A program made the position numbers and the translations under genes. From NCBI GenBank assembly GCA_907165135.1, contig OU015566.1, forward strand, positions 2,294,001-2,358,000: a DNA stretch of 64,000 nt, read 5' to 3'. Below are positions 10,495 to 64,000 of this stretch, piece by piece. The notes below the pieces were generated by a model. The model worked only from the letters and a program-made list of their open reading frames with translations, did no database searches and had not been told where the DNA came from. The stretch comes from Oikopleura dioica (Eukaryota > Animalia > Chordata). How positions within the stretch are numbered: the stretch's first letter is position 1; each line of letters starts with the position of its first letter.

Positions 10495-11805
10495 TGAAGC
10501 TAGCACCATGCCTTCTCTCAGGAATTCTAGCTGCTCCGCCGCCGGTGATTTATTACACGGAAAGTAAAGAGAAAATATAATCCTATGGCAAATTTTTATT
10601 TTGAGACATCGTCGAGATGACGAATTTTCTTCCTGATCCGAAGATAAAAATCGGATATGAAATGTCTTATGAATGGATATTCAAATTTTTTCCATCATCA
10701 TTTTCATAAGAATATTCATGATAAAAATCAATGAAGAAGATTTTTTTCATTTATTTTTTTTTGCAAATTTGAAAATTCAAAAAGCGATCAGTCGAGCGAA
10801 TGTGGAACAACCAGCTTCGAGAAATCCTTCCCGGCGTCGAAGATGTCAATCTCGCCTTGATCGGTGATAACGTCGCCGACAATGTCGATGTTGAACCCTG
10901 GATATACTACTTTGTCATCCAAATCGTCTTTGACGAGGCTAAGTGGACGGCAGATGTTCTAGATAAGGTCAGAGCAGTTTTTCCAAACTCTGCAGGTCGA
11001 GATGATGAGGTCTTTTACAATGCGATGGTGGCAAATCCCGACTTGGTTTTGGTCGAAGATCAGATGATCAACACCGAGGTAAGAATCATCACCACCATTC
11101 ATAAACGCTTCTTTTTCTAGAACTGCAAAAGCGAGGAAAAAGAATGCCGCAAGATTGACGTCGTTCAAGAATTCTGCTTCACCAACTCTTATTACTTCTT
11201 CGATGTCACCAACGAAGCAGCTCTCGAAGAAGCCAAAGCAGATTTCTCATCCGACTTCGAAGCTGGTTTCGAGTCCTACAGAACCAACGCAACTATTTCA
11301 TCGGAGAACACCGTGAATTTTTATGAAAGCAACTTCAACGGAAAATTTACTTTTGAAGTGACTTCGATTACTGATATCAGTGAAAAGGTCTCTACTTTCC
11401 AGAGCAAGTCGAATTTCAACGAAGCTGGGATTGATGGACCGGATACTCATATTTCTGGACAAACTTATTACAAGAAACGATTTCAAAATCAATGATTTTT
11501 TCGGCAATTTTTTGAGAATCGTTTGATAGAAAGAAATTTGGGTGAACAAATTCCGAACTTGCGCCGTCTTCCATCAATATTTCGAAGAACAGTTTGGTAA
11601 TGACGTCAAGGGTGCATACTACTGGAAGAACAATGCAAACAACTATCTTGAGGATCACCTGGACAATTTGAACATCAAAGAGGAAGAGTTCAACTTTGAG
11701 TTCAAATGCGTTGCTCCTGATTGCGAGCCATTTACGACGACAACGACGACAACAACAAGTATGATCACCGTTTATTTATTCATCCTCAAAAAGAACAGAA
11801 ATGAA
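10495..11805 (+). CDS. Secreted acidic protein with Thr-rich tail, unknown family
   Basis: Signal-like MKLAPCLLSGILAAPP, coding-like exons 10800-11090, 11110-11470 and 11542-11760 separated by short introns, ending CVAPDCEPFTTTTTTTT. Confidence 0.5.
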
Positions 11806-14066: not shown

Positions 14067-15374
14067 TTATTTATTTTTGTCGATTGCAGAGTCATCAAAA
14101 CAATAGATGAAATTTCGGACAAGATAAGTAGATCCAGCTTCATCCCATGGATTGCTTGCCCAAAAATGCAGTGGCCCAGAAGAATACGCGTCAGATATTT
14201 TGTAGAAACCGCTTGTCAAAATTACCCCATCTTTTTTGAGAATATATTGAACCATTTCTCGTCTAAGGTCGCAGTCAGTAGGCTCTTGAAGTTGAAGAGT
14301 AAATTGATTATATTCTTTTTCATCATCACAAGGTCCGACGAAAATCTTCTCATAATCGGATGCATTTGGATTATAAAAAGCGAACGATAAATTATCGCTA
14401 TCTTCTTCTTTCGAAATTCCAAAAACTCGATTTCCCGGCTGTCCTGTGTTTTCTCCTTGGGTAACATCAAGAATATTCAATATATCAGAAGATGATGATG
14501 GATGGTTGCATTTTATCTCCGCACTTATTCGGAAATATAGACTTACTGTTTCGTCACCGACTAGATTATTTTTCTGAGGCTCCATGGAAAATGGTTGTGG
14601 GTCTATGAATGTTATTTTCTTCTTCGAACAAAACTGTGTAAATGAAGGAGAGCAGGTCGTCGGCGGTCTCGTCGTTATCGCTGTTGCTCTTAAAGTTCCT
14701 GATGTCAAAGAAGCTTCTGTCGTTGTATCTGTTTCGGCTGTGGTCAAGGTTTTCGCTGCTGTAGTTGGTCTTTTTGTTGCGGGAGTCGTCAAAGGATCTG
14801 TCTTTGTTTCTGTTGCTGTTGTCGAAAAAAAATCTTTTCTTTGAGTTGCTGTTTCCGGTGTTGTTCTCGAGAAAAATTCTTCCGTTGTTTCCGCTTTTGT
14901 TGCTGTTGTTGTTGGGATTTCAGTTGTTATTGTTATTGATGATGATGTTGTTTTTGTTGTGATCGTTTTCAGTGATGTTGTTGTTATTGTTGGCCTTTTC
15001 GTTGTGAATGCTAAAGTCGTTACTGTTCTTGTCGTGGGAAATTCTTTGGTTTTTTCAGCTTCTGTTGCTGTTGCTGTTGTCGGGATTTTGGTGGTTATTG
15101 ATTTCAGTGATGTGGTTGTTATTGTTGGCGTTTCCGTTGAGGTTGTTGTACTCGTAACTGTCGTTTTTGTTGCTGACGATAGAATTATCGGAATAGTGAT
15201 CGTAGTAGCCGTACAGGCAAGCACAAAAAAGACGCTGGTGATCAAAAACTGAAAGATTTTGAGTTCAAGAAGAGCAGACAATCTCAAATTTACCCATGGT
15301 TTACGCCGAGGTTCTTTAGTTGCTTGAAGCTCACTGTCAAGACTTTCTCTTGATAAGGACTTTGCTCTGGTCAT
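14067..15374 (-). CDS. Intronless type II membrane mucin-like protein: signal anchor, Thr-rich stalk, C-terminal beta-sandwich-like domain
   Basis: 435-aa ORF with TM segment FQFLITSVFFVLACT, ~170 aa of Thr-rich repeats and a globular C-terminus ending ...FWASNPW...STYLVRNFIY. Confidence 0.8.
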   Translation of the reverse strand: MTRAKSLSRESLDSELQATKEPRRKPWVNLRLSALLELKIFQFLITSVFFVLACTATTITIPIILSSATKTTVTSTTTSTETPTITTTSLKSITTKIPTTATATEAEKTKEFPTTRTVTTLAFTTKRPTITTTSLKTITTKTTSSSITITTEIPTTTATKAETTEEFFSRTTPETATQRKDFFSTTATETKTDPLTTPATKRPTTAAKTLTTAETDTTTEASLTSGTLRATAITTRPPTTCSPSFTQFCSKKKITFIDPQPFSMEPQKNNLVGDETVSLYFRISAEIKCNHPSSSSDILNILDVTQGENTGQPGNRVFGISKEEDSDNLSFAFYNPNASDYEKIFVGPCDDEKEYNQFTLQLQEPTDCDLRREMVQYILKKDGVILTSGFYKISDAYSSGPLHFWASNPWDEAGSTYLVRNFIYCFDDSAIDKNK

Positions 15375-15944: not shown

Positions 15945-16645
15945 TAATGATATTAAAATCAGAATTAAATTAAGTTTTATTTAAGTATATTCTCATAAAT
16001 ATCAACCAACTCTTTGTTTCAGAAGTTTTCAAAGAAATGCTCAAAAAGAGCGTTGTCTGATTTGTTCAAATTCTTTGCAGCTTTATCAACTGCTTTTGAA
16101 AGCGCTGGGAGACCTCAACTGAACACGCCGATTTTCTCGATCGACGATCGCTGACTTCTTTTGCTGGATATCTTCTAGAAGTTCGTTGAAATCTGGTCTG
16201 CCAAAGTGGGTCACAGTTCTGAGACCAGTGAACAGGCTCTTGCCGCAGTGAGAGTCGAGTTTGTGCTCCAGGAAGTATCGCATTCGAGTTCGAAGGTCAA
16301 AGTGGTCTTTTTTCGTGAGTTTCGATCATGTTACTGTTCTTTTCAGCTTCTTACAAAAGAATTCGAAAAACAAAGTTTTCTTTGCAAGCTATGAAAGCTT
16401 ATTAATGAAAGAAATTCCAGAGCCCTTCCTTTGAGAATATCCACAATCCATTCAAATTGTTTTTTCACTTTTTTACCTAGATAAAAACGACTTTCTTGCA
16501 CTAAGTCATGCTCATATTTCTCTCTACAATGTCTTTTAAAATGGACACAAAAGGAGTGATCCCGATTCTTGCTGAGATCAAAAGAGCATTCAAATTTGTG
16601 CCAATTTTGATGACCCTCGCCAATTGGCCCGTCGACGAACATATG
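15945..16645 (-). pseudogene. Decayed duplicate of the DUOX 3' end (NADPH-binding exons, intron and 3' flank)
   Basis: Collinear with 19965-20668. Has a 7-nt insertion (acgatcg), a ~14-nt deletion and a 2-nt deletion that break the frame; homology stops abruptly near 16645. Confidence 0.85.
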
Positions 16646-18815: not shown

Positions 18816-19265
18816 TAATATATAATAATCTCGTTTTTATGGCTTCGACTGATATAACATTGGCTTCGGGAGTCGAAGGTCGACCAGCGGAAACAGCTGC
18901 ATTATCCAATGTAAAAACCGAAAATAATGACAAGCAAAAACAAACTGTCACGCTCAGAGCTGGAAAAAGTGTTCTTCCCCTGCGCTTCAAAAATCTGCAG
19001 AGCGCCCTTCGTTCTAGAAGCGCATTGAAGGTACGAAACGGCTCGGAACTCCTACTTCACGCGCTATTCAAAATATTAAAGCCTTTATCGAAACCTTTAG
19101 CTGCCACTTCATCCGCCACAATCAGCGTGATTTAAATCGTGGAGCCGACAGAACCAAATTGAAGTAGAGATGAAGCGCCGAAGTAGACTTCAAGCCGCAC
19201 AGTTCAAGGCGCTTCAATTTTTGAAGTACACTTAGGGCCGACGAGCAAATATTCAACCCCAAGAA

Positions 19266-19888
19266 CCCCTTGTGGTAAAGCCTAGAAATTTTGGGACAAT
19301 ATGTATTTAGGCCCAACTAAAAAAATTGTTATTGAAAATTTTTTGGTCTGACCACGTGATCACGGGTAACAGACCCTCGAAAAGCTAGAAAAGCTTGCCG
19401 AGCTTGATCCCCTTATGGCATCATCTTCTCGTTCGGCCAAAAAGAAAGGTCTTGGTTTGTTCTAGTGGTTTAGTCAAAAAAATTTTTGGTGCCGTCTTTA
19501 CTGTCAGTAGACGCAATTAGCTATAAAAGGACTCAAAACTAGCTTAAATTGAGTTAAAAATCCAGGTTTCACGGGCTACTTAGGCCAAAATACGTTGCAA
19601 AAAGGGCCATTTTGGACGCATCAATTCCCTCTCGCGACTCATGTGATGTTGCCACCAAAAATTTTTTGGATTCTATAGGAAGAACTTTTGTGCTCTTTCA
19701 TGTGAGCTACATTATGATCACCTGCGGTCAGGGGATCGAGGTTGGCAAGCTTTTCTAGCTTTTCGAGGGTCCGTATCACGTGATCACGTGATCATACCAA
19801 AAAATTTTCAATAACTAATTTTTAAGATTAGCCAAAATACATATAGACTATAATATAGTTCCAAAGTTTCAGGCAGTTACCTGAAGGG
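19266..19888. mobile_element. Foldback/MITE with ~140-bp imperfect inverted arms
   Basis: Left arm TTATTGAAAATTTTTTGGT..CACGTGATCAC..GACCCTCGAAAAGCTAGAAAAGCTTGCC is mirrored at 19725-19888. Confidence 0.8.
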
Positions 19889-20038
19889 ATTTTAGGGGTT
19901 TATTTTTTGCTTGTCGACCCTAAGTATACTTCATGAAGTATACAGTTTAGTATTCAAGTGTTCTTCAAGTGCAACATTTTATAGCAGAATTAATTTAAGT
20001 TTATTTATATTTTCGCAAATATCTAAGAACTCATTGTT

Positions 20039-23000
20039 TCAGAAGTTTTCGAAAAAATGCTCAAAGAGAGCATTGTCTGATTTGTTCAAATTCTTCGCAG
20101 CTTTATCAACTGCTTTCGAAAGCGCCGGTGGTCCACAACTAAACACGCCAATTTTCCCGATCGCTGAGTTTTTTTGCTGGACATCTTCTAGAAGCTCGTT
20201 GAAGTCTGGTCTGCCAAAGTGGGTCACGGTTCTGAGGCCAGTGAAGAGGCTCTTGCCGCAGGGAGAGTCGAGTTTGTGCTCCAGAAAGTATCGCATTCGA
20301 GTTCGCAGGTCGAAGTCGTCTTTTTTCTGAGTGATGAAAACGTGAGTTTCAATCATGTTACTGTTCTTCTCAGCTTCTTGCAAAAGGGTTCAAAAAACTA
20401 AATTTTCTTTCTTAGTTATGAAATCTGATTTATAAAAGAAATTCTTGAGCCCGTCCTTTGAGAATATCCACCATCCACTCGAACTGCTTGTCACTTCTTT
20501 TGACCCAGATAAACACGACTTTCTTGCACTTTGTCATGCTCATATTCCTCCCAACAATGTCCTTCAAAATCGACGCAAAGGGAGTGATCCCGATTCCAGC
20601 TCCAACCAAAACGGAGCATTCGAATTTGTGCCAATTTTGATGACCCTCGCCAATTGGCCCATCGACGTACATCCTTGGAACGGGGAGTTTTCCTGCTTTG
20701 ACTTTTTTCAAATGCTCTCTGAGCGAAATCGTCCACGGACCGACAGCTCTCACGTGACAGCTGATAAAGTCATCGGCAGGGCAAGAAGTCAGAGTGAAGG
20801 GATGAAACTCCCACTTTGAAACTGAAGCAAAAATTATTCATCCTTGATTTCGATAAAGAGAAACTGACCTTCTGGGAGAGCAATTCTGATCCACTGACCC
20901 GAGTGATAATCAAAACTCTTCGGTCTCTTCATTCTCAAGCACGTGACGCTGGATTGAAGAAGGTCGAATTCCTTGAGGGGCACTTTTCACCGTTTATTTT
21001 CTTGTTTCTTTTATCAAAGAAAGTGTATTCAAATATGAACCCGTCAACAAATGACAACGCTTCTGTGGAAAATCAGACAGCCTTATTTGCGAACAATCAC
21101 TGTAAACAGACTCTGACAACCTTTAGAAAAGGCAAAACGGTTCCTTCGACATAAGATCTTCTTAGCTCAATTATCTTGTCAATCAAAAAGATAATCCCCG
21201 GCCCGAGCAGGTAAAATACGAATTTCGGCTCCTGTAGTAGCGCCTGTAATCCGTGAAGACTCAGTAGAATGAAGAAGAGCGGATAGAGCATGTGCGTCTT
21301 CCAAAAGACCTTATGCCGTTTTCGTCGAGATTGGGCGGCGGCGAAGACGTAGATGATCGACATGATGAGGACAAGAAGCAGTCCAGTTATGCCTTGATGG
21401 CTGGCCCAGAGGAGCTGGAAAAATGACTTCTCGGGCTCGTCGTCGCTGAAGATTTGAGGGAGGACGCAGGAAGCGGCTTGGTATGGCGCTTCGGAGAGGA
21501 AGTAGAAATTGAGGAAATGGCCGATCACGTGGATGAGGGAAAGAAAAGCGCCGACATAAGCAGCAAGTTTGTGAAACTCGACGGATTGATCGAATGGAAT
21601 GTACTGTTTTAGGGCTCAGTTTGGGATTCGATTTGGTTGAATGACTGAAAACTAAGAGGATTTAATTTTCATAATTAAGATAAGATTATTGAGTAAGGGT
21701 GTTCGGATGTGAACTCTTTGACAACTTCTGAAATTAATTGGTTAAGAGAGCTTTGCCATTTTTTCAAGGCCTCTTCACTAAAAATTGAAATGATCTATTA
21801 TTTAATGCTTTTATCGGCAGCCAATCTTTCAGACGTAAATTGGAGCCGAGACCTGATTAATTGCTTTTTGCCGAAGCCTAGTCAGCAAATTTCGGGACAT
21901 CGACAAAAGCATCATTGGGTAAATGAAAGAAAGCGCAGCTGCTGTGGATCGTGACATGAGAAGTCCAACTTCTGTTATTTGCCGAATTCCTGCCGACTCG
22001 TTCAGAAATAAGAAGAAATAGATTCTGTCGACCATCAAAGCGATAATTATTCCGAAGAAAATGAAGAGCGTGTATAAATGCCTTCGTTTTTGCTCGAAAA
22101 TTCGTCGGACTTTCTTCGGTATAAATCTGCCGTAAAACGATTGTTCTTCATCTTTCATCACGAGGCTCCGGACCCGGTAGCGGCTGTATCGCCTGTTCGT
22201 CGTCCTTGGAACTGTAAATCTCCGACTGACTTTGCTTGTACTAAGCATCAACTGTATAAAGAGCTCGTTTTCCGCCTGATCTTCTCGTGACTTGATCCCA
22301 AGGCCTTTCATCATCGCCTTGCATGCCTCGTGAAGATCTTTTATGTCTTTTCCGACAGAGCTTTTTGTGATCAAACTGACGATTTTTTCAACTCCTTCTT
22401 TTGAAATTATCATCGAATCTTTGTATTGCTTCTGGAGAATTTCCGCTCGCCAGGAAGGATCGTTTTCGGTAAGGCGAGTCAGGAACTTGATGAATTCGAC
22501 GACATGGACTTCTCCACTGTCTGTTAGATCCATCGCTTTATACAGGGTCTTTACAGGAATGAAGCAAAGTCAGAAATTGAAGATTGTTTTTGAAAATAGT
22601 TCTCCATCGACATTGAATCTTAATTTTTTTTTTACAAAAAATAAGCGCTGTCAATTGCTTGCGCAAATGAAGGACATCAAATATTGACAGTGTCATCCCT
22701 TTACTGTATAAACGTCGAGCTCTGACGTTGGCCAAAGAGCTGGCCAAGTTCAATTTGCGAAAGAATCAGTTGTCCATGTTCATCATCATAGTCGACAATA
22801 TTTGTAAAAACAGAATCTTCGTCATCATCTTTTCCAACCATTTTGGTGAACGCTTTTTGAAGAAAATCCTCGATAAGCTTTCTTCGTTTTCCTCCAGACA
22901 TGGCCATTTCGTCGATATTATTGTCCAACTCTTCTTTCAAATCAAGCTCAACTCCATTATTGATGGTAAAACTTTTCAAAACTTGGACAAAGACATTTCT

Positions 23001-37800: not shown

Positions 37801-40800
37801 GAGGACGATTTCCATTTGTTTTTGAATGCGATACGGTTCGTCAATCGAACCCTGGGACCTTTATTGAATAATTTGTAAAATAAGCATAATGGAGCGGAAA
37901 TACCACTTTATTATCAAAATAACGAGATCATACCCTTGCCGTACTTTCTACTATGAAAAAACTCGTTGATTATAAGAGTGGAGATGCAAGAAAACATCAC
38001 TTTTGAAATACCAATTATTGACTTCGGACTTTTAAAAACAAGAGATGAAGCGACGAAGAGCAATTTTTTGAAGGCAATCACTGAAGTTGGCTTCTTTTTC
38101 CTCAAAAATCATGATGTTCCTAAAGAGCTTACCGATCGCTTGGAACTTGTTTCTAGAAATTCTTACAAAACAACTTTCGAAGAAAGGATGAAGCTCAAAG
38201 ATTTCAGAGGAAAAATGGAAGTCAGCGGCTCAATCTTTCATGAGAAGCCATTCCAAAACTCCCCGTAAGTAGAAAGTTTTAGAATTAATCGACAAATTTT
38301 CCATTTTTATTCAGAGACGATGAGTCAATCAAATTGGACGAAAAAGAAATAGACTCTACTTTTTTTGATTATTTGACTAAAATTTCAAATATTGGCGTTT
38401 TTTTGCTAAAGTTTTGTGAAGGATGGTTCTTAATCGACAAAATGAAATAGTGACTTCTTATTGGCCATCCCCTGAAAATTAACCTTGCATCCGAAAAGTC
38501 AAAAAGATTATCTAAAGAGAGTCTAGAACCTCGATTTAAGAAGTCTTTGATTTGCCAAATGGTCGTTTGCTCGGCAATTTCGAGCCAAAAAAAGCAATTA
38601 TCGATGCTGTTATGCTTGAGGAAAATCCTACTGAAGAGTTTGAGTTTGAATGTCACCGGGATAATAGACTGATGACAATTCTCAAGCAAGATAGAACCGG
38701 CGGTGTTGAGATAAAATACAAAGACAATTGGTACCCCGTCTTGGAAGACCCGAAAAAAGAGTTTCTAGGCGTAAATATTGGAAATATAATGAACAACCTT
38801 TCGGACGGAAAAGCTAAAGGTTAGAGTCTTTAGAACGATTCTGAGTTTAAAAACTTTATTCTTTAGCTGTTTATCATCGAGTCAGAAGTATTCAAAATCA
38901 AACTCGCTTTATGTGGCCAGTATTTTTGACGCCGAATTTTCGGCCGAGAAAAACCGCGGTAAAGTTTCTCCGCTTCACCCATCGAGGCTGGTACGATTTC
39001 GACACTGTTGACGACGAAACTGATTTTCTGCTTTAAAAAAATCATCCACTATTATCTGCGATTAAAAAAGAAAAAAATAAAATATAATTCAATTGTGCCG
39101 ACTTCAAAAGTCTTTATATTGAACTTGATATCAAAGGATTTTTCTCGTTTTACTCCGATTTGAAGAACTTTCACATGCAGTTTTTTAACCCTCTGCGTGA
39201 CGATCAGAACTACCCCTATGCGTGACGCGGATGCATTCAGTGCATCCGACCCATCTAGAACAATTTTTTGCTCATTTTTGCCAATTTTAGAAGAAAAACA
39301 GCCTGAATTCGCTGTTGTCAGTGTCTCAGAGACCGAAATACCCCCTTCTTCGGCGGCGAAACGGGCTCGAAATTACGTAACATGCATCAAAATAGCTGTT
39401 CTCGAGACGAAAAATAGTAAAATTAGGACATTTTTTACGTTTTTAGGTTACTATAAAATTTGTTTTTAAAATGTTACGAAGCAGATTGGACGTGTTTTTG
39501 GACGTAGATTCTTATTCTTTTTAAATTTTTGAATTCGGGCGAAATTTGAGAGAGAAATGGGCAGAAAACCATGAGCGGATGCACTGAGTGCATCCGCGTC
39601 ACGCATAGGGTTAAACAGTCTCTGATTTCAATCCCCTTGATCTCAAAATCAGCATGCTTTCTCTTCTTAAAATCATTTGTGCTTAGCATTTTTAAGCATG
39701 AAAAGATTGATTTTCTTTTTAACATTGCAGTTTTGCAAGGGAATCGATTATGCTGAATTTTGCGAAGAAAAAATATCAGAGATCAATGATAACCACGCTA
39801 TCACCAACGGTCATTGGGACTGCACAAATCTTAGTAAGAATAAAGTGATTTGCCGAGCAAAATGTGATGATGGTTTTTGGTCGTTCCGAGAATTTTGGCC
39901 GACATGGAATATCAGAGACACGAAAATCATCGCCAAATGCTCCAGAGAAGGAGTCAGCTCTATAAAGAAGTAAGTCAATATTACTTTTTGATATGCCAAA
40001 AAATTTAAGACCTCTTTACGCTATGGAATGCATCAAAGAATACGAATTTCCGTGTTTTGAAAAAGAGAAAACACTTATCAAGCACGGAACACTTCAACCA
40101 AACAAAATAATTCGGAGTAAGAAAAACAAGAACGAGCTTTGGGCAGATTATGACATCGTCTGCTTCAATGGGAAAATAAAAGGTCGTGTCCGCTGTAAAG
40201 GAGGAAAATTTAAACAGCCTTCTCGTTGGGAAAGTGAAGATGTAAGATGGGGGCAGCGTTATTATGCAACGGACAAGCGTTATTCAAAAAGCTGGGTTTG
40301 GACTTGTGCGGGAGAAAGACGAACAACAACAAGTTCTCAAACAACAACAATAGTGACAACAGCAACGCCGCCAGCATGTGCGGATCCTTGCAAAGGACTG
40401 AAAAGACAAGGGTAAAAAAATTAATCCTTATATTAAATATCGGATCAAATTTGGTTTTATTTTTAGTCCATTTACTGCTGTGTCGTTTTTTTGAGGTTTC
40501 TACCCTTCTATAAAGATGCGAAACAATAATTGATGGATGAAGTCTTTCTCCAAGCTTTGCCACATGTGCTGCGAATTCTTATTATTCACATGATGACAAC
40601 TATAAAATGTCAGTTGATATACTCTGCCCATCTTCATCTGGGAGCCATGAAAATTACAATAAGTCATTGATCATTTTCAATACTGAGGATCAGGGCTGGC
40701 GAATTCGTCCAAAACTATCCGCAAGGACATAATTTCTAAAATGCTTTACCTAAGGTACGGCACTGATAATCAGATCTGCAATCGGTGATTAGTCCGTCAA

Positions 40801-42640
40801 TCAATGCGAGTCATTCGTAAATATTTCATGGGAAGAAATGGGGATTCGGATTCAAAGAAGAAACCGGGCATACCCGTCCGTACTCGCGCCAATTCGTTTT
40901 CCAGGCGCAATAATTTTTTGTTTGTTGGGCCGGTCGGGCACGAATTCGCCAACCCTGGCGCAGATTCAAATGGAGATTTATTTTTCTCAATTTGGCGAAA
41001 GCCTCTGGTCACTAATGAAGATAATTCGACATCCGATGAGCTTCATATAAAACTAGGACCAGCTCAATTAGATAAGAGTTGCAAATAAGCTAAGCTTAGT
41101 TGACGAAGTTGTTTTAAAATTTTTCGATGTAGGCTTGTCCAACTTTTTGGAGCACAAAAAATCTTAGTTCAAGTTCAAATAGAAAATATATAATTTTATA
41201 ACTCAAAGTTAGATAAGAAGAGAAAAAAGGAAGACTTTGAATTTTTGATCGATGTTCCATGCAAAGATGGCGAATGGAATACTTTTACTGTCGAGAGAAT
41301 TAATTTCGGCATCAATCGATTTCGTGAAGTTCTCAAAATGAATGATCGCGTTATCGGTCAGACTCGAGAGTATCAAGTGAAAGCTTTCCCTGGTTATCGT
41401 GCGTCATTTCAATTTTCACTGGGACTTTGGAGGAGTAGCTCTTTATGGACACCCCATAAAGACTCTCCTGCTTCAGAGTACTTAGTCCGCAACGTGTTCT
41501 TTCAGTATTTCCTTGATAATATCCGCTGTAACTACTGTCTTAATGAGTTCACATGGTACTTATCTCGAAAAAGTTGTTATATTTCTGGTTAAAGTCATAA
41601 GTTATGACTCATTATAAATAAAAATCCCTAGAATGGTATTTTCTGTTGCTGATTATTCTTTCATATATTTCTCTGATTTGATATCTTGTACAGTGGTATG
41701 AGCGGTTTCCGCACCCCTATTTTTCGCCTTTAAAAATTCATATCTTTTGATTCAGATATGATATTCGATTTCTGTTTCCAGTTATGAAATTTTCACGCCA
41801 TTTTCTATTACCGAAAAATACAATAAATAGAGTTTTTTAAAATTTACTGTGTAATTTTAAAAAATCGTAGGGGTGCGGAAACCGCTCATACCACTGTACC
41901 AAATCAATTCTTTATTTCACAAATTAAATTTCGAAAATTAAAAACTAAATTTATCATTTGAATTTGAATAAACCAAAATCAAATGAATAAGACTTACGGA
42001 TTGATTTTTCAAAATGTTCCTTCGCCATTTTATTCTGAATCGCCTTAATCCGCCTTCTTTCCTTTCTCTGTTCGACATAAAGCTGCCAGACTTTCAGCAA
42101 ATCCGCCTTGAGTCGTTTGTATCGAAAATTGTAAGCAGCGACGTAAAATCTTTCCTCCGACGGGCCATAAGAGTCGATTCTTTCGATTTCATCGCGGGTC
42201 TTTGTCGCCATGAATTTCGCGTCTGGCTTGAATTGAGGGATGAAATGATTCCATTTAACAGCGTCGAGGCCTTTTTCTCTGATTTCTTTCAATTTTTCCA
42301 GAAGAAATTGTTTCGGGGAAATTCCTCCTTCAGCTCCATTAATGATAAGTTCGATTAAAATCGGCTCAATGATCTCTGCCAACCGATGCTCAACGATGTA
42401 GTTTTGCGTTTCTTGGGAATGATTTCTTTTGAGAAAGTTTTCGGCGAAAGTTGAACTCAAGTAGCCTCTTTGGCGAGTGCGGGCGGAGGAAATGGTGAGT
42501 GTGTAACTTGGCGGAAGGGGCCCGTTTGGGTAGGAATAGACATCCGGCTCGGTTCGCGGCGCTAGAATTTAGATTTGAAAACATTGATCTATGTTAAGGG
42601 TTTTTAAAATTTTAAATATTCAATTAAAATTCTCACCCAT
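34894..42640 (-). CDS. FBXL13: F-box/LRR protein 13 (dynein regulatory complex subunit 6-like)
   Basis: N-terminal exons MAPRTEP... and YNFRYKRLKADLLKVWQLYVEQRK, in-frame splice SI|QTKALKSW across a ~4.2-kb intron, F-box LPRVIAIKIFSFLNIEEISICRAVSREW, then Cys-containing LRRs. C-terminal exon choice is approximate. Confidence 0.8.
37984..39036 (+). CDS. Second 2OG-Fe(II) oxygenase (IPNS-like), nested antisense in the FBXL13 intron
   Basis: IPIIDFG...EVGFFFLKNHDVP (DIOX_N), CHRD (HxD), VNIGNIM, AVYHRV; RFMW in place of RxS. Confidence 0.8.
39189..39610. mobile_element. piggyBac-type MITE
   Basis: TTAA|CCCTCTGCGTGACG...CGTCACGCATAGGG|TTAA, with an internal second TIR copy and GCGGATGCA-TGCATCCG palindromes. 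Confidence 0.85.
39698..41592 (+). CDS. Secreted protein with sushi-like Cys modules, short Thr linker and C-terminal beta-sandwich-like domain, nested antisense in the FBXL13 intron
   Basis: Signal peptide MKRLIFFLTLQFCKG, NGHWDC...ICRAKCDDG, YDIVCFNG..GRVRC, C-terminus ...PASEYLVRNVFF. Confidence 0.7.
41691..41896. mobile_element. Tc1/mariner-type MITE, 206 bp
   Basis: Perfect 28-bp TIR CAGTGGTATGAGCGGTTTCCGCACCCCT with TA on both sides. Confidence 0.9.
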
Positions 42641-44193: not shown

Positions 44194-44730
44194 GTTAATG
44201 CGAAATTGGCGTAATACAATTTTTGGAACAATTAAGCTTGGACGAGTAGTTAAAGGAATTTCTAAGGGTGGACGACGAAAAAAAGGAACTTTTAAGCTTG
44301 GACGAGGAAAAAAAGGAACTATTAAGCTTGGAAGAGGAAAAAAGGAACTGCTAAGCTTGGACGAGTAAAAGGAATTTTCGATTTGGAAATTTTTTCAAAT
44401 TGAATTTTAAGGGTGTTAGAGGCCTACCGGCCTATAGAAACCCCCTTAAAATGTTCCTTTCGATCCCCTCTTTTATTTAAACGGGGTTTCATTAGGCCGG
44501 AAGGCCTTAAAAACCCTTAAAATTTAATTTGAAAAAATTTTCCAAATCGAAAATTCCTTTTTTCCTCTTCCAAGCTTAACAGTTCCTTTTTTCCTCGTCC
44601 AAGCTTAACAGTTCCTTTTTTCGTCGTCCAAGCTTAACTGTTCCTTTTTTCCTCGTCCAAGCTTAAAAGTTCCTTTTTCCCCGTCCAAGGCTGAAAAGTT
44701 CCAAAATTTGTATAATGCCGCGAAATTAAC
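44194..44730. mobile_element. Foldback element whose arms are tandem arrays of a ~30-bp unit
   Basis: Near-complete palindrome. Unit AAGCTTGGACGAGGAAAAAAAGGAACT is repeated ~5 times on the left and inverted ~5 times on the right. Confidence 0.85.
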
Positions 44731-44907
44731 TGGATAGAAAAATTTTAATTCACCTCATAAAATAAAGATCACCGTCACTTTCGCTCACAAGCGTTATAGC
44801 AGTAGATCCTTGCTCCTCAATAATTGTCACTTTCTGAGAATTGTATCCGATGCTTAATTCATCTGATGAAAACATAAATATTAAAGTAATCGATTCGTTG
44901 ATTTATT

Positions 44908-44949
44908 CCGGGGACGCGTTTCGGCAAAAAAGTGCCTTCATCAGCCCTA
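44908..44949 (-). ncRNA. Minimal type I hammerhead ribozyme (PLE-associated)
   Basis: Minus strand UAGGG-CUGAUGA-A-GGCA-cuuuuu-UGCC-GAAA-CGC-GUC-CCGG: intact core, 4-bp stem II, palindromic ACGCGU stem III. Confidence 0.75.
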
Positions 44950-45814
44950 GTACAGAAACTTACCCCCCCCCCGGAAATGGATTCTGCGGGTCAAAAAACG
45001 ATTTTGAGGCTACATTTTTTGGGGGTCTATCTCGACTCTTACACCCCCAAAATTGCATTTGAAAATTGCACTTTTCGCCGAAAATTGATGAATTTGCCCT
45101 AATTTTGGCAAAAATATTGTTTTTTTAGGCCAAAAAGTCCTCATATCAAATTTTTGAAGTAAGACTAACCTGAGGAGGGATTAAGAACCAAAAATATGGT
45201 GTTTTCAAGAATTTCCGTTTTTCGAAGGAAAAAGCTGACGGGGGTCCTTAACACCTCAGAAAAAGGAAGAGTACTCTTACCTTAGAGTGGACAATTTCGA
45301 ATGAGAACGAAAGTTGAAAACATAAAATAAAAATTCGCTTTCGCGGCAGGTGAGAAGGCTTCCAACAAGATGCGATCTTTTTAATAAGGTTGGTTGGAAA
45401 TGACAGTCACGATTTTATTTTTCAAGCTAAATTTAGTTTTAATCCTAGCCCTTGATGTTGTGGGTTTGTACTTGTCTGGCTCACTTAGATAATTATCATA
45501 AAGCTCTCTTAATTTTGGACATCTCAAAGTATGAGATGACTGTCATCTCGAACCAAAATTATTATAAAGATCGCATCTTGTTGGAAGCCTTCTCAATTAA
45601 GTTTAACGACCCTAGCTTGAACAAGCAACTCAAATTTGCTGAAGTTAAATTTCTATAGTGGAGCATTTGAAATTCGCTTTCTCTGGCGCTCCATTCACCT
45701 GCCACGAAAGCGAATTTTCATTTTCTGTTTACAACTTTCGTTCTCATTCGAAATTGTCCACTCTAAGGTGAGAGTTATCTTCCTTTTTCTGAGCTGTAAA
45801 GTAAATTTCTGTAC

Positions 45815-45856
45815 TAGGGCTGATGAGAGCACTTTTGTACCGAAACACGTCCCCGG
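45815..45856 (+). ncRNA. Second hammerhead ribozyme copy with a mutated stem II
   Basis: UAGGG-CUGAUGA-GAGCAC-UUUU-GUACC-GAAA-CAC-GUC-CCCGG. Confidence 0.6.
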
Positions 45857-45904
45857 AATAAATCAACGAATCTATTATTATAAGAAGTCAACTATAAGAC
45901 AATT

Positions 45905-55596: not shown

Positions 55597-58500
55597 ATGA
55601 GATTTCTCGCTATTATTTTTTGTTTTTTGATGATCGAAGAGGTGGGGGCAAGTTATGGTCGAAATCTGAAACGGTTTGTGAAATCATGGAGGAGTATTTT
55701 TTGATTTATTAAGGGCGAGTGCGAGTAAGTTTTTGAAAGCTTATCTTGAGAGAAAATTCAATGACGGAACCTTTTTTGACAATCGGGGAAAGATTCGCCA
55801 GCAAAGCCACTATTTTCTTGGTAGAAGAGGTTGAAGATTTGACCAATTTTAACTGAAAATAAATTCATAAAAATGACCTTTCATGTGTTGGAAATTTTAT
55901 ATTTTGGTCAGGTCAGAGCATGTTTGTGTGTTCTCCTTCTCTTTGAAACTCGCCTTTTTTCTCGAGTGCTTTTGTTCCCTCAGCTCTTTGCAAAAAGCTT
56001 TTCTCAGCTGCAGCGTTTTTGAAAATATGCGATAATGAAATTAGGCCTTTTTAATTTATTTTTCTTTATTGAGATTCGAGCTCAGAGTTCAAACAGAAAA
56101 TGGAGGTGTCCGTCGGGAAGATCAAGGAAAAGATAATTACTACCCAAAAAGTAAGATTTCAGAAAAAAATAGTAGCATTTAAAATTAACAGAACCAATCC
56201 ATTGTCCTTGATTGAATCTTCATACAGTACTCATACTGTATGCTGCAGAAGTAATCCAGTGGAGAATCCTCAGATTATTAATCTTGTAATGCGGGAAGAC
56301 CTCCCTGTATCGGAGATAATTTCTTTTGCTCCTGCTATAGAAGTTGAGGAGCCACCAGATCTGCTCTCAGTGAGATCCGCTAGTAATCCAAGAGCAAATA
56401 TTTCAATCGACGATGCCTTTTTCGTATCCGGAATTCAAGGGCTGGACATTTGCTCTGAAAATTTCATCTGCGCTGGGGACTTTTTTCGACCTCTATCGTC
56501 TGAGCTACCAGATTTGCCAGCACTCGAAAGTTTCCGTCTCTTATCACAAATCAATTTGAAAGAAATGGGCGGTGGACAGTTCCGATTTGGATTCAATTGC
56601 AATTTTGAGTCTATTCAAGAGGAGTATCAAGTCGAGCTGACAATTCTAGAGACAGATTCAAGCCCATGGCAGAATAAACCAATCATAACTGGAACAAACG
56701 AAACGAGAATTTATGAAGGGCAAAGAGGAGACATCGCCGTGGTCAAAATCGACTCCTATGATTTCTTAAAAGAAAGTATGATTCTTGATCTTCGAACGAT
56801 CCCTGAAGATGTTAGAAATTTTATAGACGTCGATCTTCAGCCAAATTTCCTTCTTCCATATGCTCGACCCGGGGCGGTTAAATTCAGTCAAAATGCCAGA
56901 ATCACTGTCAATTCTCCGCTTAACCCGAATGATTTTGGCGGGCAATTTGAAATCGTTCTTCAAGCAAAAAGTTGGATTGATAACGAAACTTTTGGAATCT
57001 GGTCGGACAATTTTACGATGACGGTCGTTGTCGAAGACCTTGACAACTTGCCACCGGTGTTTTTGGACGAAAGAAATCAAGTCGATATTTCTGTAGGAGA
57101 ATTTGATGAGAGTTTTGTGCTTTTTAATGCTTCAGCGATCGATGGAGATCGAGAAATTGACACGCCAATCAATGTGACGATCTTAGAAGGACCGTTGAAG
57201 GATCTGCTCATTTTGGAAAACAATCAAATTCGGCTGAGAGAAGAAATCACCGACTCAGACCTTCTTCGATTACCGGAATTTTCAATCCTACAACTCGAAG
57301 CTCAGCAACTCGACAATCCAGAAAAGAAAACAACGAAGACTCTTCTAATCAAAATTTCCAAAAACTTCGAGTCCCAATTAACATCAGATGAATGCTCCTG
57401 CGAAACAGTCGAAAACTCGTCGTTCTCTTCCTTGATTTCTCCGGTGCAAAACCAGCGTTTTCTCTGCTCACTTTTCTTTGAAGAAGCATATGTTTTTTCC
57501 GTGGAGAGATTTTGCAGCGATTTTAAAGAAGAACTAACGAATCTAGAAAAAGCTCTGATTGCATGTCTTTGCTTATTGATTCCTTTGTCGATGATAAGTC
57601 TTATTCAAAAAATCGCACCGAAAATGAAAAACTGCAAAAATGATGCTTCAAAGAAAATCGAAGAACATGAACAAATCGAGGTGAAGGATTTTCCTGAACT
57701 CAAAGAAAAACCAGCAAAAGTTCATGCAAACGTGGAAAAAAGGAAGAGTATGAATCCATTGGTCGATTCAGGAACTTGGCTTTTGATTTTGGCTTGGCCC
57801 TCTTGCGGATGTAGGTCGGGCCATTATGCTTTTACCCCGATTTTACATATCAACAGAAATTCTGTCATTATGATTTCATATACAGTTTTTTATGGAATTT
57901 CTGGACATCAAATTTCTGGACATTTTTCGGATTTTAAGGGGTTTTCTGGGGACAAATTCAAAGAGAGGGGGTATCAAATTTCTGGACATTTTTTCTCAGC
58001 AGATATCTTCCACATCTTAATTTATGATCAAACTTGAGTTATTGATGCCAATTTCATCTATAAAGAGCTGTGTTTATTTGAAACTCTTATAATATGATAA
58101 AATAGGCGGCTACAGCGCGTTTCTTTTAATGTTTTTCAGTTATTTATTTGAAAAAAATCGTAAATTTTTCTTTCTCGAAAAATTTATAAGCAATTTTGTT
58201 GGGACATTTTTCTCAAGGCTCTGTATCAAATTTCTGGACATTTTCGGGAAAAATGGGGGACAAAAAATGTCCAGAAATTCCATAATTAACTGTATCATCA
58301 AAAAGTAGGCATTTATATTAGAATACAAAGCCAAAAAAAAAAGACCGAACTCATCACAAAATCAATTCCTCCACAATCCTTTACGGTCAAATCATCAAGT
58401 CCGGTTCAATCAAATCTATTCAAAAAGTCGCGCTCGCAGGCGAAACCTCATTTGGCGATGATATTGGCCCTTCATTTGACAAAATCGTGAAGAAGTCGAA

Positions 58501-61500
58501 AATTGAAAAACTCCTTGGTCAAGAATGTATTCATTTGTCCGCGTTTATCAATTTGCTCAATTTGAAGAACCTTACTCACGAGAATATTTTAAAATATCAC
58601 GGCTCATTTTTGGAAAACAACGAAAACGGCGATGATTTTTCAGTAGGAATTGTTTGGGATTTAGCTGATCAGGGCTCGCTGGAAGAACTGTTTTCATTTT
58701 ATCGACAGGCAAAGGTTTCCTGAAGGCTATTTTTCATCCCATCATTCTAGAATCACTGGAAACGATTGACGGACTTGACCGAAGCTCGATTTCAAAACTG
58801 GATCAGAAATATTATTGCAGCTCTTCAGGCCTGGGCTCAAAAACCTATTATAAAGCGACCCTGACTCAGGTTTTTACTCGAGTTATCGAGCCCGGCTTAA
58901 GGTATGTTTTCAAAAGACTCAATATTTTTGACGAAGAAATAAGTATTTTCACGAAAACGACGTGATACTCGGCCGATTATCCTGCAAAAACATACTCATT
59001 GATGCGAATATGAATGCGAAAATCGAAATTTTACCGTCAACGAGCATGGGAGACTTGCACGAAGTTCGGTGGTGGTCGATTGAGCGATTTGAAGGGCAAT
59101 TGAGCTCGTTTAGGAATCGGGAGTTTATTTATTTCGTTTTTTTTAGTAGAATAATTCATGGTAGAATTCAGTTGAGAGTTTTATGACTATGATAGGCTCA
59201 AAATCGATATTTTCAAGCAACAGGCAGTCGCTCAGAGCATTCTAGAGCTGTGAGAAATCGATTGAAAATCTTTTTGGATCGTCTGATATCAGACTTGATG
59301 TTTCTATTTCTTCGTTTTGCCATTCTGTCGGCTTCGATTTTATCCAGGCAGACATGATGATCGTAAAATTCCATTGTCGAGTTAATCAAAGACGCGAAGC
59401 TTCGACAAATGTCTTCATCGTCGATATTAGGCGATCTCAATTTTTTCGTTCCAAAAAGAGCAACTGTCTTATTTTTGCAGATCTCACTCGAGTGATCGTA
59501 GAACCAGGAAAATTTGTCCGCAACTCGATTAAATTGTTTGATCTTTAGTTTTTGATTCTTGACACTGTTTTCTTCAATAAAATTGCCGAGTTTTGAGAAC
59601 GCCTCGATCAGACGATTGCTTGGTGAGTCTTCCATCGCGACTAAGCGTTCGACTTTTATATCAGAAATTTCAGTTTCGAGAACTTCAACGCCAGGTCCAA
59701 TGTTGAGATTTTCGATGAAATTTTGGATTTCTTTGTTTGTTTGAGCGAGAACTTTTCTTTCGTCTTCTTCATTTTGAGTACTTGACAAGGAGTCGGATGA
59801 TCTTCTTGATAATTTCAAAAAAATTTTTGCGGGTCCGGAAATCATAAAAAATCTGAAAGTGCAGTTTTCTTGAGCTCGTCGAGACGAGTCGAATGATGGG
59901 TCAAACTTTTGATGACTCCAATGATTAACCGGTTAGCCGGCAATTTCCCGGAAAATACATTTCCGGTCGCCGTTTTTGTTCTAGAAATGCTAGAATGACA
60001 AAAAAAGAGGGAAACTGGTCCTTGAAGTTAGTTCTTCTGTGGGTGAAAAAATGAGAATCATATCTCTAACCATAAGATGCTTATCACCAAAATTCTATTT
60101 TTTTATGAAAATGGGACCGAAAATTAGGAAGGTGCAGCAACAACGAAATACATACAAAATTTAGAATTTTTATCGTTAAAAAAAGTTTCGCTATATATTT
60201 GACCAATATCTTTTTGCCCACAGTAGAACTGACCATAAGGATCAGTTTCCGGGTTCATTCATCATCCTAGCATTTCTAGAACAAAAACGGCGAGCGGAAA
60301 CGTATTTTCCGGTAACAAGCCGGTTAACCGGTCAATCCTTGGAGTTATCAAGAGTTTGACCCACCATTCGACTCGTCTCAACAAGCTGAAGAAAACTGCA
60401 CTTTCAGAATTTTTACGATTTTCAGACCCGCAAAAATTTTTTTGAAATTATCCTTGTTGGCTCCAGATACTTTCGAGTATAGATTGTCGACACGAACTTG
60501 TACCAAATTTTATGCGGTTTATTCTTTCGATCTGTCACGTGATTGACAGTCCATTTCTTCGTTATTCTCCATCCATCTGCATATTGAGCAGTATTCTTAA
60601 CAAAAATGGATAGGAACTCTCATAAGGGTTTTCAGATTGTCTTACCCAATCGATGAAATGACCATTTTTCTCTCTCAAAAAGTCAATATACTCATTTGCT
60701 TCATCAATACCACCAAATCTGCAGAAAATTTTCGCAACAGTTCCGTAGTCCTTCCAGAGAATATTCGACGGTTCAGAGCAATCTTGTCCATTGATTGCTA
60801 AAAACAAAGTTGATTCCTTTTTGATTCTTTTGAAAATATTTCTGACCGTAGCTTTCATCGTTTCTGTCTTCCATGATGCTTCCACGAAGCTGGCAAGAAT
60901 GGTCCTCCTCTATTTTGAATTTGAAGCAGCCAGGAGTATCGCGACAACTTGCGGCGCATCGCTTCTGAAAATCAGGAAGATCAACTCCGGTTTGTTTTTC
61001 AAAAGACTTTGAATAAATGGAGTCTGGAGTTAATTTGTCTTGAGATCCGATGTTCCAAGCTTTCATCAGAACTGACTCATCATCTTCAGAGGGGGACAAA
61101 TAATTTCGCATCAAAAGTTAATTTCAAAATCATTTTCAAGCACTGAAGCTTGAAAAAAACTTTTGATTCACGAAATTTTTTGTCACCCTCTTTATACGGC
61201 CAAATACAAATAGGCTCATGATCAGAGATCCGGCAATATTCGTCAGCTTTTTCTGAAAAATTTTGAAAAAAAATTATTTATGCGTTTTATACTTGAGGTC
61301 ACTCTCAATTGAAAGCCTTCATTCGTTTGCCCAAAGACGTCGCTTTCGAAAATAATCTTTATCTTGGTCCCTCGGACATAGACCCGACGATCAAAAGTCT
61401 CAATTGTTCCATGCTCGAGTTTTTGATTGCAGTAAATTTCATTGAACGATTGATCTTCGTTCGTTATGACGAGTTTGTCAAAATAACATTTTTTATGACC

Positions 61501-62578
61501 TGAATATCATTTACGCTACAAGAAGGTTTTCTAGACTCTAGAATCTAGAATCTAGACTCTAGATTCTAGAGAGAAGATGTTCATACTTTTAACATCAAAT
61601 CGTAGAGGGTCGACAAAAAATCCATCAGCGCATTTATCTTGAAAAATCCATTCGCAGAACGCAGATCTTGGATAGGTAACGATTTCAGTAGTAGAATTAC
61701 CGAAAAAGTAAGAATGAATCGGCGAAGAAATCTCTACGCTGTTTTCCTCATCGGTGAATTCTCTTACAAATCCGCAGTCCAAGAAATCGGCGAGAGAGCG
61801 TTTTAAAACGAAACTATAAAAAATCGAGAAAATTTTCATTTTACAATTTTTTTTCTGATTGAGAGACCATGAACTTTTGCATTTATACGGAGCATTTGAG
61901 CTTACGGCTTAGTTTAATACCGTAGTTGCCCGCCGATCTGCCGTTACTAGCTTCGCTCCGACCTAGTAATCCACGAGTATCTCAAGATTGACAATTTTGC
62001 TTTTGAACTTCATTTTCTTATTTTCTTTTTATTTTTCTAAGATTCACGATTTCGCCGTATTTTTGGGGACCCCCTCTAGTATAACAAAATCTTCAAACTC
62101 CGACAAGTTCAGACATCTGGATGCTCGGCGTCACCATTTGGCAGATCATGAATTCAGGTAAGCGGCAAAGCCGACCCGCATAAAATCGGGGTCAACTTAT
62201 CTCCCCGATACCTAGGCGCCACGCCATATGGACACTTGTCCGGCCCGTCGCTCAAAGAAGAACTCTTCAGTTTACTCAAAGTTGACAGGCTCTCCATGAC
62301 TCGATCCATTCCAGAGGTACTCATTCCATTGCCAAAAAACGCCCATAACCAAATTGTCTATTTAGCCACTTTACGGAGTCCTGAGTAACACATGGAAGCG
62401 CGACGCGGAATTACGACCGGATATCGCGCAGATTAAAATTGACACCGACGACATCTTCTCGAAAGGTGCCCTTTTGATGATGACTAATTTCAAGCGTGTG
62501 ACTTTTCTCTTTCTAGGTCCTTTGAAACCCGTCACCAAAAGAAAATTGACTCCCATCGTTACTGAGAAGTTTTGACTG
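55597..62578 (+). CDS. Cadherin-repeat receptor with a tyrosine-kinase-like (pseudokinase) domain, RET/Cad96Ca-like architecture
   Basis: Signal MRFLAIIFLFF, cadherin motifs EDLDNLPPVF and SAIDGD, juxtamembrane Cys, TM ALIACLCLLIPLSMISLI, N-lobe exons 58322-59094, C-lobe SDIWMLGVTIWQIM..GATPY...WKRDAELRP at 62108-62578. Joining the lobes across a ~2.9-kb intron is inferred. Confidence 0.65.
57883..58292. mobile_element. Tc1/mariner-type MITE, family A copy 2 (inverted relative to 5761-6177), intronic
   Basis: TA|CAGTTTTTTATGGAATT...AATTCCATAATTAACTG|TA, with collinear similarity to copy 1. Confidence 0.85.
59213..61839 (-). CDS. Secreted CUB plus PAN/apple-like multidomain protein, nested antisense in the receptor-kinase intron
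   Basis: Signal MKIFSIFYSFVLKRSLA, CUB (CG..ISSP..YPRSAFCEW..FDVKS|HKKCYFDKL..IIFESD..EGF), PAN-like CAASCRDTPGC..HSCQL. The last coding block is split by the element at 59808-60452. Confidence 0.7.
59808..60452. mobile_element. 645-bp foldback MITE with 3-bp target duplication (CTT), coinciding with a GA-AG intron
   Basis: 28-bp perfect terminal inverted repeat GATAATTTCAAAAAAATTTTTGCGGGTC, arms similar over ~250 bp, CTT at 59805-59807 and 60453-60455. Confidence 0.9.
61530..61570. repeat. Intronic microsatellite of palindromic TCTAGA units
   Basis: tctagactctagaatctagaatctagactctagattctaga. Confidence 0.8.
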
Positions 62579-64000
62579 CTTTGACTGCTCAAGAAATATT
62601 TTCATGAGATTTCATGAAAAATCGCAAAATCGATGTTGACACCCTTAAAACCCATTTTTTGATCAGAAATTAAATAAAAAAGCGTAGTAATTCTAATTTA
62701 AAATTTGTAAAGGCATTACTACGGCGCATGAAAATGAGCATTTTCTAGAGTAGTAGAAGCGTCTGGCTAATCCAACGCGGCGGATCGTCTAAGCGCCAAA
62801 TTTCTCTCCAGTTCTAAAAACATTCTTTTTGCCCGGTTTGGTATGCAAGCTGGCGATAAGACATTACCGCATGTTTCGTGTTTCAACAAACGATCTATAA
62901 AAAATGTCCAAACCGCTGCCTGAAATAACTTTTCCAAATATATTTTTTTTCGCCAAAAATAACGGATTAAATAATCGGATTAGTTTTGAAGTTATTAAAG
63001 CCGATGAGATACTAATTGAGCAAGAAAATGATTGAAGTTTACGATTAAAACCCACTGAACGACCAATTTCCCGTGGTTAATTGCTCAAGTTTAAAATGAT
63101 CACTTCCTTTTTTCATGACAACTCATTCTTAAAAAATGACAATTTTTTGTCTTTTTTTTTGGATCAATTTTTCTCCAAAAGGAAAAAAATTCGTCGATTT
63201 TAAAAATTCAAAAACGGTGAAAAATATGTAAAACAAAATGTTTATGACCACTCTTCCCGCGTTTGAAATTGTGTCGGTTAGAGAACGGTACTTGGCAGAT
63301 TCGCATGTTGGCGTTCCAGGCTGTTGACCCACGTGACTTGGCGGGTTACAAAGATTTATGGCGAATGCACAAATACCGATCTATCGAATTTTTTGTCATT
63401 TATGTCGGACCACTTGTCGCGTTTCCGCTCTCGCTGCCCCGTAATGGGAAAGCGAGTTTTGGAATCGCCTCAAAAATGCACAGAAAAATGAATAAGGATG
63501 AATTTTTCTTGATCGAAAAATACAGAAAAAAGAATAAATTTAGTTCCTTTGAAGCTTTCAATTAAAAAATAAACCTCAGGAAGAAGTCAAAAAGGGTCTT
63601 GGAAGCAAATCAAAGAACCTGCCCTTATTTCTCAAATCTTGAGCCAAGGAAGAAGCGCTGGGAACGGCGATATTGACTGTAAACTGCGTGATACAATCTG
63701 GCGGAAGGGTTTAACTCGCCTGGGAAGGTGTAATCTGTTTTTTTTGTCAATAAATGCAAATGATTTGAAAAAGACCAGGTTTAAAAATATTATTGAAAAA
63801 AAAATGCATTTCTCCGGAAGAATGAATTTCTAGAGCCGTGGAAACAGGTGTTGCCGTGGCAGGGAAAAGCGGATTAGGACGGAAATAGGGTTGAGGGTGA
63901 TTTTTGATAAGCGGAAAATCGCAAAGTCGCAAAAATAAAAATCGTTGAGCGCGCGCGGGGGAAGCCGTTACCGTCGCCGGATCAGGAGTCGATACGATTG

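Follow-up and report, generated by a model that had tools for sequence, protein, structure and literature searches.

A DNA transposon of 645 nt has inserted very recently into the last exon of g575, a secreted-protein gene of Okinawa Oikopleura dioica, where it segregates beside an empty allele and where the element plus one copy of its 3-nt target site duplication (TSD) make up the whole of a GA-AG interval whose removal keeps the reading frame intact. The filled allele is known from the genome assembly. We regard the element as a clean candidate for a nascent intron, of a kind already known; every step that would lead from this geometry to a spliced transcript we infer.

The Insertion and Its Host Gene

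The window, by which we mean the whole 64-kb stretch of DNA analyzed, contains the following features at the insertion site:

59213..61839, minus strand: Oidioi OKI2018_I69 chr1.g575, the interrupted gene, whose public model encodes 529 aa
60453..60595, minus strand: upstream part of the interrupted exon, 143 nt, stop-free, behind a GTAAGA...TTAAG intron
60453..60455, minus strand: first TSD copy, AAG, which supplies the exonic AG preceding the GA donor; the single AAG of the empty site
59808..60452, no strand assigned: non-autonomous foldback MITE, 645 nt, from inverted-repeat and end analysis and folding
59805..59807, minus strand: second TSD copy, AAG, the candidate 3' splice site
59213..59804, minus strand: continuation of the exon downstream of the insertion, 196 codons and a stop, encoding a conserved Cys/Trp larvacean C-terminal domain
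59114..62107, plus strand: intron of an overlapping RET-like kinase gene that encloses the whole of g575, element included; ends AG/GAATCG...GACAAG

The preliminary description had proposed a transposon with terminal inverted repeats (TIRs) and a 3-nt TSD within a coding exon, and this is what we find: on the minus strand the exon reads ...TAT CTG GAG CCA ACA AG, runs into GATAAT...ATTATC at 60452-59808 and resumes with the second AAG at 59807-59805. The proposed stop-free upstream exon of 143 nt with its GTAAGA...TTAAG intron is likewise borne out, and the downstream frame comes to 196 codons. A query with the downstream exon retrieved the 529-aa protein chr1.g575.t1, the last 196 residues of which are identical. 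The product begins with a signal-like stretch and contains a CUB domain and, by inspection, a PAN/apple-like Cys pattern; its C-terminal domain is conserved in larvaceans. The gene belongs to a small larvacean family whose paralogs g4728, g9613 and g3677 have the same C-terminal domain. The linker that holds the insertion is otherwise poorly conserved and differs in length among the homologs, and its YL-to-LA span measures 22 aa in the spliced model, as it does in P0002, the closest outside homolog.

Since g575 lies antisense inside the RET-like intron, on the opposite strand the element is merely intronic. That 3-kb intron itself appears to be of the GA-AG type with a poor AAG acceptor, and 14 RNA reads of run X12 agree with its junction at 26/30 letters.

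Several further observations concern g575. Its public model omits about 20 in-frame codons (DDESV...KLTP; window 61083-61025, minus strand) for which g4728 and g9613 have conserved counterparts; the true acceptor probably lies at 61084. The g575 intron at 61088-61191 (minus strand), a palindromic GT-AG intron of 104 nt with the ends AGAGGGTGAC...GTCCCCCTCT, has a palindromic counterpart at the same position in paralog g4728 (L009, about 10664-10782) and none in g9613, and is possibly an older, fixed transposon-derived intron. Intron 1 carries a TCTAGA tandem/palindromic repeat (61528-61571) that is 35 nt shorter in DNA run X5, and a 67-nt stretch within 59127-59198, just beyond the g575 stop, is missing from haplotypes in DNA runs X2 and X5.

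Other repeats are found elsewhere in the window. A MITE family with TACAG...CTGTA ends has two copies (5759-6179 and 57881-58294), the second falling within the RET-like gene where a 645-aa ORF ends, and there are five unrelated inverted-repeat elements (44208-44719, 19222-19933, 39211-39613, 41688-41899 and 44881-45883) as well as a direct duplication, 84% identical, of 15960-16642 and 19985-20672. Two short high-depth repeats, 58854-58893 and 62617-62650, are joined one to the other by many contigs and probably represent a small dispersed repeat family. An ORF of 435 codons (14067-15374, minus strand), with a 165-nt repeat inside it, has neither a Pfam match nor, at E 0.001, a homolog.

Structure and Class of the Element

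The element has a perfect 28-nt TIR at its ends and two arms of 245 nt each around a 155-nt spacer, and we class it as a foldback-type MITE because the arms are 85% complementary over that length. Besides the TIR and the 3-nt TSD, it is short, noncoding (the longest stop-free frame is 68 codons), multicopy and accompanied by empty sites. As RNA it is predicted to fold into a single hairpin with an energy of -362 kcal/mol (z = -33.6 relative to shuffled sequences), a stability far above chance expectation. On the strand of the gene, arm mismatches are not biased to G-U pairing (13 vs. 9, p = 0.52), and nothing therefore points to selection acting on the stem as RNA.

PHIS transposons (PIF/Harbinger and kin) have 3-nt TSDs and TIRs beginning with A or G, and the 3-nt TSD and G-first TIR of the element accordingly suggest kinship with PHIS/Harbinger. 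TWA is a target triplet of the PIF/Harbinger group; neither it nor the PHIS triplets ANT, CWG and TNA are matched by the two duplications at hand, AAG/CTT and AAA/TTT (n = 2). No transposase with the same ends was found in the 64-kb window or in four 21-kb loci.

Empty Alleles and Insertion Age

The empty-site allele that had been sought is present in exact form in X2, a run from another sample, where a contig joins 59804 to 60453, skips 648 nt and contains zero other differing letters across 60453-60946. X5, from a different study, adds two further haplotypes that lack the element and are equal in net length; since they read PTTRSS and PTTRLS, the AAG target triplet is itself polymorphic. We considered whether the altered triplet in X5 might be an excision footprint and set this aside, since it occurs on two divergent haplotypes with the length kept. 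The paralogs g4728, g9613 and g3677 and the marine-metagenome homolog L002 have no intron at the insertion position and carry one continuous last exon instead, and L002 shares the upstream GTAAGA intron of g575. The intron position would hence be novel, absent from homologs and from three haplotypes.

Recency had originally been argued from the perfect 28-bp TIR. The conclusion itself stands, because the empty allele sits on an otherwise identical haplotype, but the argument does not: with 36 of 245 arm positions mismatched, the perfect terminal 28 nt are weak evidence of age. It is very improbable that the insertion reflects an error of assembly or an old intron with only the look of a transposon. 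In favor of such a reading, none of the runs examined showed the filled allele; the clean TSD, the exact empty site, the existence of a second full-length family copy, an assembly built from 221x Nanopore reads (PMC8008620) and the lack of an intron at this position in homologs all speak against it.

The Element Family

The inferred multicopy family is real: in both DNA runs, reads pile up on the element to tens or hundreds of times the depth of its flanks (a rough figure that gives no copy number), and a second full-length copy lies in another O. dioica locus:

L008, 12171-12809: second full-length family copy, 639 nt, 75% identical, ends GATGAT...ATCATC, TTT duplication

This copy is intergenic, about 530 nt downstream of g3677, its arms are about 93% self-complementary, and it has TTGCAG where the element in g575 has an inner TTTCAG acceptor. 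It confirms the 3-nt TSD and the GA-type ends as family properties and makes clear that targets other than AAG are used; flanked by TTT, it could not be a scarless intron. It is also the only copy besides the insertion in about 150 kb sampled, and no further ones were found in the window, L007, L009 or L010. The element ends and the arm motif gave no match in two metagenome pattern scans, and the one viral match (L006) was rejected as a family member, being a 21-nt chance match with no similarity beyond. A related element with a GATGAT end occurs in RNA reads seemingly from a divergent lineage.

The idea that this family exploits the tolerance of O. dioica for GA donors is so far unsupported, given that the only other copy found is intergenic with a splice-incompatible duplication. 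The donor in g575 departs from the reported GA consensus at +3. By chance, a 3-nt duplication would end in AG at 5.6% of g575 coding positions, and splice-compatible insertions are therefore expected from any abundant family with GA ends. A stronger model, in which an active and widespread family of GA-ended foldback MITEs with 3-nt TSDs prefers AAN targets, a set proportion of the copies landing in exons turn instantly into exact GA-AG introns and exact splicing is furthered by the 245-bp stem in spite of the non-consensus +3 base, strikes us as improbable. Were it true, it would provide a dedicated and tractable source of GA-AG introns in a laboratory chordate, with both alleles on the same background.

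Splice Sites of the Candidate Intron

Three features bear on how the filled allele might be spliced (slashes mark splice sites):

59805..60452, minus strand: candidate intron, 648 nt, GA-AG (AG/GATAAT...ATCAAG/A), phase 2, used in public model g575.t1
59853..59858, minus strand: inner TTTCAG acceptor within the distal arm, the use of which would keep the frame and leave 48 nt (16 aa) in the mRNA
60422..60427, minus strand: inner GTCTGA donor just ahead of the first stop, frame kept only with a weak AG at 59906

Translation of the joined frame confirms the earlier expectation that removing the 648 nt restores YLEPTRRSSDS, a sequence equal to public protein P0001, and the predicted premature stop of unspliced RNA is found at the 10th codon of R-IISKKFLRV-stop. 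The sequence shows that a cut-and-paste MITE with a 3-nt TSD jumped into an AAG within the poorly conserved linker. Both of its ends read GA inward, and a duplication ending in AG on the sense strand turns any insertion into AG/GA...AG, an arrangement that makes this copy removable without a scar. GA donors after an exonic AG serve about a tenth of O. dioica introns, and in the pathway that we envisage the permissive U2 spliceosome of this species would take out the element at these sites, perhaps aided by the hairpin drawing both ends close. The outcome would be a nascent, unfixed transposon-derived intron whose splice compatibility arises incidentally from the element's ends and a target hit by chance, with no targeting involved.

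The splice sites offer evidence in both directions. An exonic AG precedes the GA donor (AAG/GA), as in GA-AG introns of the O. dioica type (PMC7072748, PMC5714493), and predicted U1 pairing is stronger at the GA site (-3.0 kcal/mol) than at the GT donors of g575 introns 1 and 2 (-1.8 and -1.6 kcal/mol). GA donors are reported to carry A at the third intron base, the position being explicit only for a copepod (PMC7072748, PMC5714493); the element's donor, AG/GAT, has T at +3, and that of the neighboring RET-like intron is AG/GAA. The candidate acceptor is an AAG with a U7 run 8-14 nt upstream, both base-paired in the predicted stem. More generally, donor, U-tract and likely branch region are located inside the predicted 245-bp stem, at the foot of which both splice sites stand. 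The median O. dioica intron is 49 nt long (PMC8008620), and at 648 nt the candidate is 13 times that length. In favor of exact splicing we count the exonic AG, the frequency of GA/AG introns in this animal, the efficient splicing of MITE introns in Fritillaria (PMC11282704), the weaker U1 pairing of the gene's own GT donors, the RET-like GA-AG neighbor and the equal linker length; against it we count the T at +3, the stem, the 648-nt length, the rival TTTCAG, the several g575 paralogs and the youth of the allele, on which selection has hardly had time to act. On balance, exact GA-AG splicing of the element in a useful share of transcripts is the reading that we tentatively prefer, with a likelihood only a little short of even.

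A different course of splicing would chiefly use the inner TTTCAG at 59853, adding 16 residues to the linker, or else the GT donor at 60427. As many as 13 donor-acceptor pairs preserve the frame, TTTCAG is the most canonical acceptor among them and linker length varies among homologs anyway, but TTTCAG sits deeper in the stem and is not conserved, reading TTGCAG in the sister copy, while the GT donor stays in frame only with the weak AG at 59906. We hold such imprecise splicing to be rather unlikely.

What RNA and Annotation Can Say

RNA from the empty allele yields, letter for letter, the same junction as a spliced filled allele, and neither junction reads nor annotation can therefore decide whether the latter is spliced. 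Intron hints for the OKI2018_I69 annotation came from RNA-seq of pooled culture animals (PMC8008620), and the re-annotation admitted noncanonical sites only where they were hinted. With pooled hints, annotation should yield a GA-AG intron regardless of how the filled allele is processed; we accordingly rejected the public model as splicing evidence, the pooled empty-allele RNA giving an identical hint. RNA runs X12 and X9, apparently from a divergent lineage, contain zero reads on g575 exons and match only at 88-95%, on a RET-like exon and the element arms.

These considerations lend weight to a plainly disruptive allele, in which the element is left (almost) unspliced, the message stops 10 codons in and is degraded or yields a truncated product, and the annotated intron reflects empty-allele RNA laid upon an insertion-bearing reference (PMC8008620), where the same 648-nt gap would appear if the pooled animals carry the empty allele. 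Such an allele could persist because it is new and probably heterozygous and because g575 has paralogs. It would fit the very recent origin of the insertion and its absence from three other haplotypes, and it would also fit the atypical +3 base and the long stem. The chance background, moreover, would supply splice-compatible cases that a first reading preferentially picks out. Set against this are the presence of the obligate exonic AG and of an AG acceptor with its U7 run, the tolerance of the O. dioica spliceosome for weak sites and the expectation that near-neutral spliced insertions should outlast nulls. We take disruption to be a serious possibility, though one that falls clearly below an even chance.

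Should the preferred reading of exact splicing hold, g575 would present an intron at birth in an animal that can be cultured, the two alleles sharing a haplotype that differs only by the element, and would allow a clean test of whether tolerance for GA donors makes new transposon insertions neutral at once. The case also carries a caution for annotation: where insertion and empty alleles co-segregate, annotated noncanonical introns and their junction reads may stem wholly from the empty allele, and such introns may consequently be overcounted.

Comparison with Known Systems

Intron gain through transposon insertion has already been reported for Oikopleura (Denoeud et al. 2010, as cited in PMC3296678 and PMC3443670), and the novelty initially claimed for a direct mechanism of intron gain was, going by these citations, overstated. 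About 11-12% of O. dioica introns are noncanonical, mostly GA/AG (PMC8008620, PMC4122922). The transposon-derived introns of Denoeud et al. 2010, to the extent that the citing papers describe them, resemble the present case in species, in the presence of a DNA transposon in a coding exon and in the novel position, the difference being that in g575 splicing is a candidate property.

The element further resembles PHIS MITEs (PIF/Harbinger, Pangu and Nuwa; PMC4482050) in its 3-nt TSD, G-first TIR and noncoding nature; the targets described for these are ANT, CWG and TNA (PMC4482050), whereas ours shows AAG/CTT and AAA/TTT duplications and 245-nt arms that are longer than usual. In the MITE introners of Fritillaria borealis (Henriet et al. 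2019), as outlined in PMC11282704 and bioRxiv 2025.08.15.670264, non-autonomous TIR ends likewise form the splice sites and the TSD gives rise to the 3' site, but the ends there are AG-AC/AG-AT, most introns are of this sort, splicing is proven and U2AF is duplicated. The TIR-ended MITE introns of Fritillaria are, by the account in PMC11282704, efficiently spliced; g575 offers in comparison a single GA-AG candidate with an ordinary AG acceptor. Closest in layout are the introners of Gozashti et al. 2022 (bioRxiv 2022.06.06.494994, Fig. 2C class), where the element contributes the donor, the TSD contributes the acceptor and mRNA length is unchanged, although introner families exist as many copies that are whole spliced introns, whereas the only other copy seen of our element is intergenic and splice-incompatible. 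By its geometry, then, the element is introner-like, a candidate member of the already known type of transposon-made introns.
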